Under the pieces are notes generated by a model, which saw only the letters and a program-made list of their open reading frames with translations, made no database searches and was not told where the DNA came from. DNA of 62,000 nt, taken from the NCBI GenBank assembly GCA_951406725.2, contig OX597818.1:27796001-27858000 (forward strand), read 5' to 3'. A program made the translations under genes and the position numbers. Below, piece after piece: positions 4,854-60,752 of the stretch. Origin of the DNA: Octopus vulgaris (lineage: Eukaryota). Positions within the stretch are counted from its first letter, which is position 1; the number at the start of each line of letters is the position of its first letter.

Positions 4854-5102
4854 ATGTACCTGATATTATTGCATCAGAGAATATGACATTAATTGAGAAT
4901 CAAGCATCCATTGTAAACTGTTCTGCAAAAGGAAACCCTATCCCAGAAGTGAGGCTGGAATATGAAAATCAAAGTTTTCCTTCAAACTCCCCATTCACTT
5001 TTAATCGCAGAAATAGCAGTGATGTTTTCTGTGTTGCCAATGCAAAGAGCACAAAGCATGGAAATTTGACATCTAGAAAGAAAATTAATATCATGTTGAA
5101 AT
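4854..5102 (+). CDS. Ig-superfamily receptor, Ig-like exon 1 (first one found in the window): xVPDIIASENMTLIENQASIVNCSAKGNPIPEV...VFCVANAK...NIMLK
   Basis: Acceptor ttttttatag at 4853, donor gtatgt at 5103. 249 nt, phase 1-1. Has the Ig B-strand C-x-A-x-G-N-P-x-P motif and a second Cys. Confidence 0.85.
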
Positions 5103-5124
5103 GTATGTTAAGTATAGATATTTT

Positions 5125-5390
5125 TCCTGCTGCTGCTGTGCTGCTAAGGCTACTGCTACTACTACTACTACTACTACTACTACTACTACTACTACTACTA
5201 CTACTACCACCACCACCACCACCACTACTACCACCACTACTACTACTGCTGCTGCTGCTGCTGCTACTTCTACTACTACTACTACTACTACTACTACTAC
5301 TACTACTACTACTACTACTACTACTGCTGCTGCTACTACTGCTGCTGCTACTACTACTACTACTACTACTACTACTACTACTACTACTAT
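5125..5390. repeat. Compound (CTG)/(CTA)/(CCA) trinucleotide microsatellite
   Basis: Directly visible just after the exon donor. Explains the poly-L/S/T/V ORFs. Confidence 0.95.
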
Positions 5391-6206
5391 TACCTCCACC
5401 ATCTTCAATGTTATCATCTTCACCACTACCATTACCATCCCCATCACTACTAGCTCCTATATATAATCTGTTGCATTCCATCACTACAGTTTGTTACTTT
5501 TTAAAGTCTTATAACCAATTAGATTATTGAAGCACTCGAAAATACTTATTAGTCACAGCGTCTTACCTGTTGCTTGGATTCATGGTACCTATTTAGAGCT
5601 TGGTGGACTAATAACTGACACAGCATAACACCAGTAAAATACATGTGTTGTCTCTTCTTCCTGCCTATTCTATTATTATTACTATGACACTGCTCTTAAC
5701 ATTACGCAACCCCTTTCCAAGATTATATAATGCATTTGTCTCTCCTACTTTCCTGATTGCTCAAGCCCTGCACTAACCACTATACACAATCAAACCACCT
5801 CAGGGATGAAGTCTGTGATATTCCCTCCCCACTTATGCATTTTTTTGCAGATATTGGTAATCAAAATTGGACACAAACTGTATCAGTCTTACCAGATTTA
5901 GAAAATTTTTGAAAGAACAAAAACTGCAGCTACTTTTAGTTGACTGAGCTCTAAGTAATCATATAATGCTTCCATCTAACATGCTGTTCCTGCCATATCC
6001 ACTGTATTTACTCTGAGAATAATATTCATGACACTATACTTTGCAATCTTGTTGCTGTTCAGATTCAGAACTTCCTAAGATTAGGAGAAAAAATTACAGG
6101 TGTGAGAGCAAATCTTGAAATCAAAGGGCCTCAACATTAACTTGACAACATTAAAGTTTTAGGCATAATTAAATCTCAGAATGAGATTGAAACAGTAATC
6201 GCTCGA

Positions 6207-6630
6207 TAATGTAAGGTATAGAAGCCATCTTATCATGGCTAACCACATTGAGGATGGAGTGTTACTGTAGCTTTATAGCCCCAAGAGATCTTCGTCTCTA
6301 GCTGGCTTTAGACACAATATCTATGTCCTTGGAGTATTTGCAAAGGGAGGCCATCCCTTCCTCGCAAGCCTGAGTGATACACTCGAACTAGTTTCGGGAT
6401 TGTTGTCCCTCGTCAACGGGCGGTAACCACCAGGTAGCGATGAAACTAGTTCGAGCGTATCACTCAGGCTTGCGTGGAAGGGATGGCCTCCCTATGCAAA
6501 TACTCCAAGGACACAGATATTGTGTCTAAAGCCAGCTAGAGACGAAGATCTCTTAGGGCTATAAAGCTACAGTAACACCCCCTCCCCAATGTGGTTAGCC
6601 ATGATAAGATGGCTTCTATACTTTACATTA
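6207..6630. mobile_element. Foldback MITE: about 189-bp inverted arms, 46-bp spacer, TA at both ends
   Basis: 6207-6395 is the near-exact reverse complement of 6442-6630. TA ends fit a Tc1/mariner-type target duplication. Confidence 0.85.
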
Positions 6631-7219
6631 AAGTTTTAGTATATCAGAAAACATACAAGACTCTTTCTCCATCTGGAAAGCTGCATTGTTTGATATGTAA
6701 AATAGAATTGGGTGGAAATTTGATACAGTGTACTCACTGAAAGTGCATCCCACTGTAGTAGCCCTTGAAAATATGATGTTTCATTAGCTATAAGGTCAAG
6801 TTCATATTGCTCCGAGATTATGGATTTGTAGTGGTTTAGATCCCTAACTGTGTCTTGCTGTGATTTTCTTAATAAGAAAACAAATTCAATGACAATCTTA
6901 GAATATGAAGACTTACAGGGTATGAACAAAAATATATTTTACAAAATAAAAGCATAAAAAAAAGGGAGAAAGAAAAAACAAACCTCAATGCAGTAGCAAG
7001 TGCTTCAATTGGTTGCATACCACAAGGTTCAGTGGAACCTACTGAAGCAAACCAGCACTCTTGTGGCATTACCATGGGCACATTCATGTATTACTATAAC
7101 CATATTATTTATAAATTTATTTTTGAAATGTGTATGGAACTGAAATTTTGTATTAATTTTTATTATATTTTCTAAACTGAAACTGCTTTCTGATTTTGTT
7201 TTTGTTATTTCTTTTTAAG

Positions 7220-7474
7220 ATCCTCCTCAAGTAAACATTCATATTTCAAATGAGACAAATAATACTTTACTAATTAATTGCACTGCATTTGATGGAAATC
7301 CAGAAAAATATGAATACAAACTGAAGCAAAAATGGGGAAACATCACTAAGAATACTTATAATATAAATGTATTATCAATAAATAATTCTACTTTCAATAA
7401 TACTGGTACATGGGAGTGTCATGTAAGCAATGAAGATTTTCATGTGAGTAAATCATCAAACTACAAAATTCCAG
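7220..7474 (+). CDS. Ig-like exon 2: YPPQVNIHISNETNNTLLINCTAFDGNPEKYEY...NNTGTWECHVSN...NYKIP
   Basis: Acceptor ctttttaag, donor gtaagt. 255 nt, open, phase 1-1. YPP start, C-x-x-x-D-G-N-P motif and an F-strand T-G-x-W-x-C. Confidence 0.9.
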
Positions 7475-58664: not shown

Positions 58665-58706
58665 ACATGAATGATGTTTATGTCAGTGTCTCCAGGAAAC
58701 CTGATG
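58665..58706 (+). CDS. Tail exon B4: DMNDVYVSVSRKPD
   Basis: Intact splice sites. Two synonymous differences from B2 (GTC TCC vs GTT TCA). Confidence 0.72.
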
Positions 58707-59413
58707 GTAAGTGCATTAGCAATCCATAAAAAATATTACATGCACTGGAGCAAGAGTTAACAAATATCATGGTTCAGTGTTTCATTGGGTAGTATAGTCA
58801 GTTTAACTTATGCCTTTTATCTTTTACTTGTTTCAGTCATTGCACTGCAGCAATGATAATCCCTCAACTTGGACAAATATTGGTTTCTCATGCCAGACTG
58901 CAAAGCTCTCTTGATATATATAAACCTCGCTAAAGTGACATCAACTGTGCTTGTGCTACGTAAAAGGCATTAAGTCCACTCTGTTGAGTGGTTGGTTTTA
59001 AGAAGGGATTCCAGTTGTAAACATCCTGCCAAATGACTTACAGAATTCTAGTGCAGTCTTCAACCTGATCTGCATTTGTCAAACTGTCCGACTTGTGCCA
59101 GGATGGAATGCGTACAGTAAATGACGAGGATGAGGATGTTGATGATATAATTATGTTCATACAATAGGGTACTTTCAGTTTCTTTCTGCCAAATCCATTT
59201 ATGAGGTTTTTGTTGGCCTGAAGCTTTAGAAGAAAATGCAATGTGAATGTGGTTGGGAAGCTAGCTGCTTATCACACAGTAATACCCGTGCCTATGTATG
59301 TTTGTATATAAATTATAGAACTTATTTTTTTGGTTTCTTTCTATGCAGCATCAAACATTTAAAACATACTCTGCAAACAATAAATATGCCCATTTTTATA
59401 TAATGTCTTGTAG

Positions 59414-59473
59414 ATGTGAAAGAGCAGCATGCTGAAGGTAGTAAGCATGAATATGTATATATAAAAGAACTGG
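59414..59473 (+). pseudogene. Diverged A-type exon with dead donor: DVKEQHAEGSKHEYVYIKEL
   Basis: tcttgtag acceptor, 60 nt, open. Flanks are homologous to the A exon flanks, but the donor reads G|ggaagt instead of G|gtaagt. Confidence 0.65.
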
Positions 59474-60406
59474 GGAAGTGCTATAAATATTGTTAGTACA
59501 CAGCATGATTTCTGAAATTATCTTAAAAAATTTAATGACATGCAGAGACAAGGTGTTTTGTTAACCAAACATAATAGAGTACAAAGTATATTAAACCATT
59601 TTATAAGTCAATATCATGTACTACTGAGTTAGCTGTGCTCTTAAATCTCGTGTTCAGGTCATCTCTACTATTTTTCTTTTGGAATTATAACCAGCATTGA
59701 TTTCGTTATGACATTTGGTATATGAGATGCCACATGTAAACAAACACTGGAATTGAATATAGAAAAAGGACAATGGAATATATGCGATATTTTAGCAGTT
59801 TTTGCCCTTTTATCAGCACCTATCCAACCTTTAATCATCCATGAATTCGTTGTTTGAATAACCACTATATCAAATACATTGTTGGTTTACATCTGGTATG
59901 AAATGTTGTAACAAAATCACTGCTGTATTTATACGAATAAACTAAATAATTATATGACTAATATTGAATGCAATAGATGCTTGCCTACACATGATACACT
60001 AAGTATTAAACAGATATGCAATGGTGAATGTGATCAGCTTTAGTTGTTGAGTATCCAAAGTTACTCTCGCTTGTTGATTACTCTAGCAAGAAAAAAACCT
60101 TAGAAACAATCTAATTTCTATAAATGTATTTGTGAGTGGCTACATCATCATTTTTAATTATCAGTTTAAATATTGAAGTGATGGAATCAGTACAATATTG
60201 TACTAAACATTGATGGAATAAAAATTAGTGTCAATATATTCTGAGGTCAAAGTCCATTGAGGTGAGAGACTGATATATAAAGTATTAGGCTAAAAGTATA
60301 TATAAAGTATGTCCTGAAGTTTACTTGTTACTTTCTGCGCAATAACAATATATTAAAACATTCTCCCCAAACAATAAAGATGCCCACTTTTATTTCATTT
60401 TTAAAG

Positions 60407-60466
60407 CTGAGAGAGAACAAGATTCTGAAGATAGTGAGCCCAGATATTTACCTATGAAACACCCAG
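60407..60466 (+). CDS. Tail exon A5: AEREQDSEDSEPRYLPMKHP
   Basis: Intact splice sites. 60 nt, phase 1-1. Confidence 0.75.
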
Positions 60467-60710
60467 GTAAGTACAATCAATATTGTTAGTACATAGCATG
60501 ATCTTTAAAATGATCTTAAAGAAACACCAACAATCATGAAATGTATATTCTCATTTAGTCTGTTAACATATTTCTACACGCATATATGTGTGTGTGAGTG
60601 TGTTTGAGTCCATGTCATTAGTGTTTATTATGCTAATATCACAAAAATACTAACATGATATAAATGTAATTTATAGCTATAACATAAATACTTGCATAAA
60701 TTTCTCATAG

Positions 60711-60752
60711 ACGTGGATGATGTTTATGTCAGTGTTTCAAGGAAACCTGATG
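60711..60752 (+). CDS. Tail exon B5: DVDDVYVSVSRKPD
   Basis: ttctcatag acceptor, gtaaat donor. 42 nt, phase 1-1. Confidence 0.72.

Follow-up and report, generated by a model that had tools for sequence, protein, structure and literature searches.

What does a chain of small exons spread over 56 kb of the Octopus vulgaris genome encode? The chain lies in a window of 62,000 nucleotides (nt) from contig OX597818.1 (C5:27,796,001-27,858,000, plus strand), where an initial annotation, made without database searches, had assembled exons at 4854-60752 into a receptor of the immunoglobulin (Ig) superfamily. We followed up this prediction in the whole genome (2.8 Gb, 227 contigs), with coordinates given in window numbering and upstream exons given as negative positions counted from window base 1. 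Exons 6 to about 23 of a real protein-coding gene on the plus strand, which make up its 3' half, lie in the window, and the predicted product is a type I membrane protein with a signal peptide, seven Ig domains, one transmembrane (TM) helix and a cytoplasmic tail. We regard a multivalent phosphotyrosine docking receptor, in which valency changes by duplication of exon cassettes, as its most likely function, with moderate confidence and on the strength of sequence features.

All exons proposed by the initial annotation are present and can be read in one frame. Each of the 18 exons at 4854-60752 (+) has a polypyrimidine tract, an AG acceptor and a GT donor (mostly GTAAGT), and joined together they form a single open frame of 510 codons. 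Exon phases are 1-1 throughout, except for two microexons of 19 and 17 nt that jointly restore the frame. The gene is larger than the 56 kb and three Ig domains first described. It covers about 127 kb (C5 ~27,754,682-27,881,465, +; coding span ~126.8 kb), starting about 41 kb upstream of the window and ending about 23 kb beyond it, and contains at least seven Ig exons, of which the three described earlier are the last. A tblastn search with Octopus homologues as queries located four further Ig exons upstream on the plus strand, at -37372..-37088, -21113..-20802, -2974..-2717 and -465..-211, all with AG/GT splice sites and phase 1-1. The exon for the signal peptide (ATG-MEFNLLHLKFLLIIQCVC-G, donor GTAAGT, +) begins with an ATG at -41318; a relaxed tblastn search for alternative positions upstream returned only this exon at -41.3 kb. 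The search for upstream exons that had been recommended was therefore productive, and the resulting gene model has 30 exons, all open and with intact splice sites, encoding 995 amino acids plus a signal peptide of 19 amino acids, or about 1014 in total.

The locus had been described as hidden, which is not the case. With a short query, the best matches were "uncharacterized" Octopus proteins at 43-66% identity, and the full-length model gave two better ones. Residues 323-1045 of the Octopus sinensis RefSeq protein LOC115212116 (P0009, 1220 amino acids) map to the locus at 94-100% identity, microexons included, and contain AVKCKK-DISSAK-GVVDYYETIPDKRY-NAVSADATNLSKLK-A1-B1-A2-B2 and onward, where A and B denote the two exons of the tail cassettes described below. 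Residues 1-322 of P0009 are just 42-64% identical to the upstream Ig exons and residues 1046-1220 match the tail of another paralogue, which suggests that the model is chimeric or reflects a different assembly. It also skips five tail exons (m5, A3, A8, B9 and B10). The second match, O. bimaculoides LOC106879981 isoform X2 (P0010, 975 amino acids), is collinear with our model from the signal peptide to the distal tail, with 74-91% identity per Ig exon, one extra (8th) Ig domain and two young A/B pairs. Based on these alignments, P0010 is the orthologue and P0009 is the same gene. The microexon order is common to both (AVKCKK/DISSAK/GVVDYYETI.../NAVSADAT..., then A/B cassettes), and that two Octopus species have the same exon chain in RefSeq models made independently is more than would be expected by chance. 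It is also unlikely that microexons of 17-19 nt would have been placed in RefSeq models without transcript alignments. The gene is thus already in octopus annotations as "uncharacterized", and what is unusual about it is its cassette-built tail.

The ectodomain could be assigned to the Ig superfamily by Pfam, with three large exons of the window scoring above cut-offs (I-set 7.6e-14, Ig_3 7e-11, ig 5e-8). Together with the TM segment and the gene structure, these matches support the receptor with a tyrosine-rich, microexon-encoded tail that had been predicted. The first of the three exons (4854-5102, +; AG/GT, phase 1-1) is the fifth of the seven Ig exons and is 98.8% identical to P0009 and 91% to P0010. 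Its C-strand Trp is replaced by Arg (EVRLE, compared to EVWLE in paralogues). A (CTA)n array of 81 copies (5150-5393) begins 48 nt past the donor of this exon. The next (7220-7474, +) is of the Ig_3/ig type with a canonical Cys...Trp...Cys arrangement. The membrane-proximal exon (9668-9976, +), which gave the I-set match and is 100% identical to P0009, is missing its F-strand Cys, with YTLTLEN in place of Y-x-C. The absence of these two residues had been noted in the initial annotation and was borne out by comparison with the paralogues. Invariant in the membrane-proximal domain across the family is a block of the form CFYSHPKSDVKWQ...FPFKGxC, and the B-strand Cys and a second Cys (KGSC) are found in all members. 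The three-Ig part (270 amino acids) holds exactly the 13 N-x-S/T sequons counted before, and the full modelled ectodomain (640 amino acids) has 27 N-glycosylation sequons. The TM exon (VTLGTIIGCFVGIVLLITLVLLI; 13598-13699, +) encodes a hydrophobic segment of 23 residues followed by the basic stop-transfer sequence YKSHKIR, and a low-confidence AlphaFold2 model of the orthologue P0010 has a helix at 778-801 over the corresponding segment.

The cytoplasmic tail comprises 328 amino acids, with 21 tyrosines and 80 Asp or Glu versus 46 Lys or Arg, and this acidic tail is probably disordered. It is laid out as a basic juxtamembrane stretch, four unique microexons and then an array of two-exon cassettes, all on the plus strand. 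The first two microexons, m1 (AVKCKK, 19 nt; 18695-18713) and the phase-restoring m2 (DISSAK, 17 nt; 25080-25096), have AG/GT splice sites and are part of the P0009 sequence. The third, m3 (GVVDYYETIPDKRY; 33503-33544), contributes tyrosines in YETI and RYNA and is kept in P0010 (as GVVDNYETISDELY) and in paralogues, and m4 (NAVSADATNLSKLK; 39331-39372) is contained in the right arm of an inverted repeat with arms of 111 nt. A candidate 30-nt microexon of truncated B type, m5 (NMDDAYVNVL; 43378-43407, AG/GTAAGC, phase 1-1), is found in neither annotated model (P0009, P0010) and its use is putative.

Each cassette consists of an A exon (60 or 54 nt), encoding an acidic (E/D)-rich run followed by SEP[RK]Y[LV]x[M/V]KxP, and a B exon (42 nt) encoding DxDDxY[VA][N/S][VI]xxKPD. 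In cassette 1 the A exon (44066-44125, TEREQDAEDSEPRYLSVKHP) and B exon (44368-44409, DTDDIYVNVLRKPD) are separated by an intron of 242 nt, and both are included in P0009. Cassette 2 has its A exon at 47814-47873 (..SEPRYLPMKHP) and its B exon at 48114-48155 (DMNDVYVSVSRKPD), and cassette 4 (A 58365-58424, B 58665-58706) duplicates it at 97.6% identity over 1.4 kb. Between them, an orphan A exon without a B partner, A3 (57449-57508), lies at the duplication edge and has no corresponding extra unit in the O. sinensis model P0009. The last exon known from the initial annotation is the B exon of cassette 5 (A 60407-60466; B 60711-60752, DVDDVYVSVSRKPD). Beyond the window, the array continues with A exons at 64207-64266, 70613-70666 and 72577-72630 and B exons at 65051-65092 (Tyr>Phe), 70884-70925, 72881-72922 (Tyr>His) and 76560-76601. 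The terminal exon (85455-85530, +, ~23.5 kb past the window end) is read in phase 1 and ends in ...GYQ-stop, in agreement with the ends of P0009 and P0012 (GDYQ) and P0048 (SGYQ). The terminal exon of the family is apparently read in two frames, phase 1 giving G-Y-Q-stop (this gene, P0009, P0012, P0048) and phase 0 of the same bases giving (V/I)TSEGPC...SDEQKEPR... in the paralogues P0003 and P0038; in this gene it has a 1-nt indel relative to P0003. In addition, read-through of the A-exon donor would give GKYNQYC-stop (44126-44150, 47874-47898 and the same place after each A exon), and the RefSeq model of the paralogue P0005 ends just so (...KPAGKYKQYC), which suggests isoforms with shortened tails produced by intron retention or early termination.

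How did the array come about? The duplicated unit is the whole A-intron-B segment (about 0.35-1.4 kb), with copy-to-copy identity of 68-97.6%, and these alignments show that the cassettes arose via local genomic duplication of the entire unit. Units 1 and 2, for example, share 92% identity in the A exon, 86% in the B exon and 92% in the intron. At least 40 A-intron-B units were found in the genome. We ruled out that the unit is a dispersed transposon, because all 40 scored copies adjoin family genes. Young A/B pairs number two in O. bimaculoides versus five or six in this genome, while the older distal units B8, A9, B9 (with His) and B10 are common to this gene and its orthologue, so that the array has expanded recently in this lineage.

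The repeated tyrosines fall into few types. Seven YxxM and four YxN motifs were counted in the tail, with SEPRY-LPM (YxxM) from the A exon and DDxY-VNV (YxN) from the B exon alternating at fixed spacing. A relaxed pair, Yxx[LMV]-x8-Yxx[VI], occurs five times at A-B junctions with an acidic residue at -3, and the Tyr-to-Tyr distance of 12 residues and the same three motif classes recur in the paralogues compared. Phosphorylated YxN is the signature of Grb2 binding, with pYVNV being a classic Shc site, and pYxxM is that of the p85 subunit of PI3K, whereas SH2 domains of the Syk family prefer Leu or Ile at +3. At the level of motifs, the tail has what is expected of a Grb2/p85-docking tail, namely repeated YxN and YxxM sites in a predicted disordered acidic region. 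Taken together, the motif profile and the SH2 specificities favor a docking tail, with ITAM-like use (immunoreceptor tyrosine-based activation motif) being possible.

In the proposed mechanism, Src- or Syk-type kinases would phosphorylate the tyrosines with acidic flanks once the ectodomain has bound a ligand or become clustered, turning the tail into a multivalent docking platform for SH2 proteins. The YxN sites would recruit Grb2/Drk-type and the YxxM sites PI3K p85-type SH2 domains, and the fixed pair Yxx[M/L]-x8-Yxx[V/I] may serve as a degenerate ITAM for the tandem SH2 domains of Syk-family kinases. The number of docking modules would be tuned over evolutionary time by cassette duplication and probably also by exon skipping, since every cassette is phase 1-1.

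The same tyrosines bear on the "Siglec/CD22/SIRP-like logic" with which the receptor had initially been compared. If it were an inhibitory receptor of this kind or of the PECAM type, SHP-1/2-type phosphatases would be recruited to its phosphorylated tail tyrosines, and signalling would be reduced. Such a role would agree with the multi-Ig ectodomain and tyrosine-rich tail, the heavy glycosylation and the fast-diverging multigene cluster, and some relatives (Argonauta P0018 and the paralogue P0017) end in T-I-Y-A-D-[IL], which resembles an immunoreceptor tyrosine-based switch motif (ITSM). In the tail studied here, however, just one of the 21 tyrosines (SVYVNV) fits the inhibitory pattern (ITIM, [SIVL]xYxx[IVL]), none fits the ITSM pattern TxYxx[VI], and the repeated motifs carry Pro or Asp at -2. 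No V-set domain passed the Pfam cut-off either, the candidates (E = 0.08-0.11) falling outside the N-terminal domain, and no sialic-acid-binding Arg context was identified in the ectodomain. We consider an inhibitory receptor of this type improbable, and the initial comparison is not supported. One Pfam family, PF16525 (haemophore MHB), matched the tail at 2e-9 to 3e-12, above its cut-off for whole proteins, and was rejected as a summed-repeat artefact, with no single stretch passing; the same false positive is listed among the precomputed domains of P0009.

Several observations weigh against a docking receptor with functional cassettes. A canonical ITAM (Yxx[LI]-x6-8-Yxx[LI]) has no match in the tail, and the +3 residues are Met and Val, not the Leu or Ile favored by Syk-family SH2 domains. 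The youngest B copies read YVSV and have lost the Asn of the Grb2 site, and two B exons have Phe or His in place of Tyr, the His being kept in the orthologue. In units 1 and 9, which are 62% identical in A, 69% in B and 78% in the intron, the exons are no better kept than the intron, so that constraint on single repeats is not demonstrated; the coding parts of the cassettes may even diverge faster than the intervening intron. The joining of the exons rests on computational RefSeq models, and one of these, P0009, is chimeric at its N- and C-terminal ends. Neither look-ups of P0010 and P0011 by exact sequence nor a protein search with the tail only turned up a protein or cDNA derived from transcripts of the gene; the sole match in the tail search was one paralogue. 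Searching the literature by topic and by LOC identifier returned no paper on the LOC115212116/LOC106879981 family and no expression, phosphorylation or binding data for any member. AlphaFold2 modelling of P0010 with an alignment of 13 sequences was unusably poor (mean predicted local distance difference test score 35.8, predicted template modelling score 0.24), and the 8th Ig exon of the O. bimaculoides orthologue was not found at the locus by relaxed tblastn.

Some of these points could also be taken to mean that the gene is a decaying or non-functional member of its cluster, on the way to becoming a unitary pseudogene, or that the recent tail copies are assembly artefacts. The missing Ig exon, the lost Trp of the exon at 4854-5102, the substituted tyrosines and the lack of exon conservation above that of the intron are compatible with decay, and no protein of this assembly's annotation matches the locus exactly. 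The tail region also holds broken units: a B copy at +62486 without a donor, an A copy at +64764 with a GA donor, and between cassettes 4 and 5 a decayed A-type pseudo-exon (59414-59470, ..KEQHAEGSKHEYVYIKEL) that has an acceptor and lacks a GT donor. Against decay, all 30 modelled exons are open over 127 kb with their splice sites intact, and the Trp>Arg change and the His-containing B exon are also found in O. bimaculoides, hence old and tolerated. With a divergence of 2.4% over 1.4 kb, the closest pair of tail copies is not a simple assembly duplication. A gene in decay or an artefactual tail therefore seems to us a poor explanation of the locus, and a docking receptor the better one.

Does the wider family point to the same kind of receptor? 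In the genome there are at least 10 copies of the Ig exon at 4854 and 12 of the membrane-proximal Ig exon. Seven family copies, this gene included, lie within 1.8 Mb on C5 (27.48-29.30 Mb), which is the paralogue cluster that the initial annotation had suggested looking for; two more are on C28, two on C31 and one on C15. The copy on C15 (67,915,762-67,916,967) is an intronless, frameshifted retrocopy running from the Ig exons through the TM exon, which indicates that these exons of a family member were spliced in an mRNA expressed in the germline. Among 1.84 billion representative sequences, HMMER gave 289 matches at E<=1e-3. The specific ones were from Octopus, from Argonauta hians with the same architecture at 43% identity, from Sepia pharaonis at 34% and from a freshwater mussel at 28%, and the remaining matches were hemicentin-like giants at about 25% identity. 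The gene carries both the invariant CFYSHPKSDVKWQ...FPFKGxC block and the A/B tail by which members of the family can be recognized. On this distribution, it belongs to a multigene cluster that is young, diverges fast and is restricted to cephalopods, possibly with a relative in a bivalve. The earlier expectation that there is no named or conserved orthologue was upheld, as only generic Ig similarity (contactin-1 at 1.8e-6, hemicentin-like proteins at ~25%) was found outside cephalopods.

Tails of other family members differ in their motifs. Some paralogues have QYAE[AVI]S or LYAKVN repeats or a terminal TIYAD[IL], which hints at functional diversification inside the cluster, and the Sepia relative has NGNEPQY[IM]N[AV] repeats. 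Pairwise ratios of nonsynonymous to synonymous substitutions (dN/dS) between the Ig exons of this gene and its paralogues were 0.5-1.2, with dS of about 0.10-0.28, each from a single exon with ~50-60 synonymous sites and without a significance test. The initial annotation had proposed computing dN/dS among Octopus species; high values were indeed obtained, from paralogue exons of this genome. Values in this range are compatible with a young family under relaxed or diversifying selection.

These data also bear on a primarily adhesive role, homophilic or heterophilic, in tissue or neural wiring, as for nephrin, SYG-2, Kirrel, contactin or DSCAM, in which the tail would link adhesion to the cytoskeleton. 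Seven to eight tandem Ig domains are in keeping with such a molecule, nephrin also signals through several tail tyrosines, and the best PDB sequence matches were contactin-1 (1.8e-6) and DSCAM (3e-4). One family member has been automatically named "synaptogenesis syg-2-like" in O. vulgaris (P0007). However, the PDB matches are weak and reflect generic Ig similarity, the "syg-2-like" protein is the frameshifted retrocopy on C15, and neither a Pfam match to FN3 in the protein model nor a YDxV motif in the tail was found. The dN/dS values and the species-specific number of cassettes would be unusual for wiring molecules. Primarily adhesive function thus appears unlikely to us. For a young and fast-diverging clustered family, a recognition receptor (immune, self/non-self or cell-cell) fits better than a housekeeping adhesion molecule.

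Comparison with better-studied receptors helps to place the docking tail. We consider the nearest experimentally studied analogue to be CgIgR of Crassostrea gigas, which has five Ig domains, a TM segment and the ITAM YTEL-x8-YEKL, binds bacteria and recruits Syk (PMC6994640). Both are mollusc type I multi-Ig receptors, and in the A-B pair of the octopus tail, which has an acidic residue at -3, the two tyrosine motifs are likewise spaced by x8; the octopus pair differs in having Met or Val at +3 rather than Leu or Ile, in being repeated at least five times and in being split over two microexons. No orthology between the two receptors was seen, no test aimed at it having been made. Nephrin and SYG-2 share with the octopus protein a long Ig array, a TM segment and a multi-tyrosine tail, and differ from it in the FN3 and YDxV features mentioned above. 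Among vertebrate proteins, docking motifs are found as YMNM in CD28, YxxM in CD19 and YxN sites in LAT. The likeness to these lies in multiple YxN and YxxM sites within a tail that is acidic and unstructured, with multivalency as the principle, but there is no sequence homology, and in octopus the sites form an array of duplicated exon cassettes on a seven-Ig ectodomain. Siglec/CD22, SIRP-alpha and PECAM-1 likewise combine an Ig-superfamily ectodomain with a tyrosine-bearing tail, and in PECAM-1 this tail, too, is spread over many short exons that are subject to alternative splicing. In contrast to these receptors, ITIM and ITSM are essentially absent from the octopus protein, it has no V-set lectin domain, and homology is confined to the Ig fold.

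The introns of the gene are rich in repeats and mobile elements. The window as a whole is AT-rich (about 30-45% GC), with many microsatellites and retrotransposon open reading frames (ORFs), and an Rfam scan of it gave no match. The 111-nt inverted repeat around m4 has arms at 37997-38107 (-) and 39328-39438 (+) that are 96% complementary and 1220 nt apart. Its left arm is an inverted copy of m4 with 66 nt of the downstream intron (peptide DAVSADATNLSKPK on the minus strand), its right arm holds m4 and its donor, and integrase-like ORFs lie between and beside the arms. The repeat would form a long pre-mRNA hairpin over exon m4 and is a candidate ADAR-editing or splice-regulating structure. An antisense non-LTR (lacking long terminal repeats) retrotransposon (49329-52404, -), with ORFs for an endonuclease-like protein of 517 amino acids and a reverse transcriptase of 531 amino acids, occupies the intron between cassette 2 and A3, and so sits between the two 97.6%-identical cassette copies. 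Other non-LTR insertions in tail introns are found at 19249-20258 (+), 40341-41456 (-), 45197-45951 and 55200-56336 (+). The intron between m1 and m2 contains a 1.3-kb (ATG)n microsatellite (23279-24592; 438 copies, 100% matches). A GC-rich element of ~350 bp (about 25290-25638) in an AT-rich intron shares 95% identity with a series of copies at intervals of ~18.3 kb on C20 (23.955-24.070 Mb) and with others that are scattered; it has no Rfam match and appears to be a piece of a large tandem-repeat unit.

Gene models of the cluster should be used with care, as current ones are chimeric, truncated, or fused to neighbours or transposons. In P0112 (O. vulgaris CAJ1099246.1, "Adhesion GPCR G6-like", GPCR being G protein-coupled receptor) and P0008, family tail exons are fused to an N-terminus resembling an adhesion GPCR, to the reverse transcriptase of a LINE (long interspersed nuclear element) or to both, which looks like the result of fused gene models. 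We did not accept P0112, which carries A/B tail units, as evidence that the module is shared with other proteins, as the C-terminus of P0112 also holds LINE reverse-transcriptase sequence.

A more far-reaching interpretation, which we offer as speculation, is that the A-intron-B cassette is an evolvable module of signalling valency. Each copy would add one degenerate ITAM-like pair (ExxYxxM-x8-YxN/SV), with the number changing between species by duplication and within an animal by skipping. The 1.8-Mb cluster would then be an independently evolved counterpart of the vertebrate clusters of paired activating and inhibitory Ig-superfamily receptors (KIR/LILR/Siglec/CEACAM-like), with paralogue motif sets comprising YAEx/YxxM/YxN, LYAKV repeats and the ITSM-like TIYADI. 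To our knowledge, cephalopods are without adaptive immunity, and we know of almost nothing on their cell-surface recognition receptors. A family of heavily glycosylated multi-Ig receptors is a concrete candidate for immune or self/non-self recognition in these animals, and it may offer a clean natural example of signalling valency evolving via microexon duplication.

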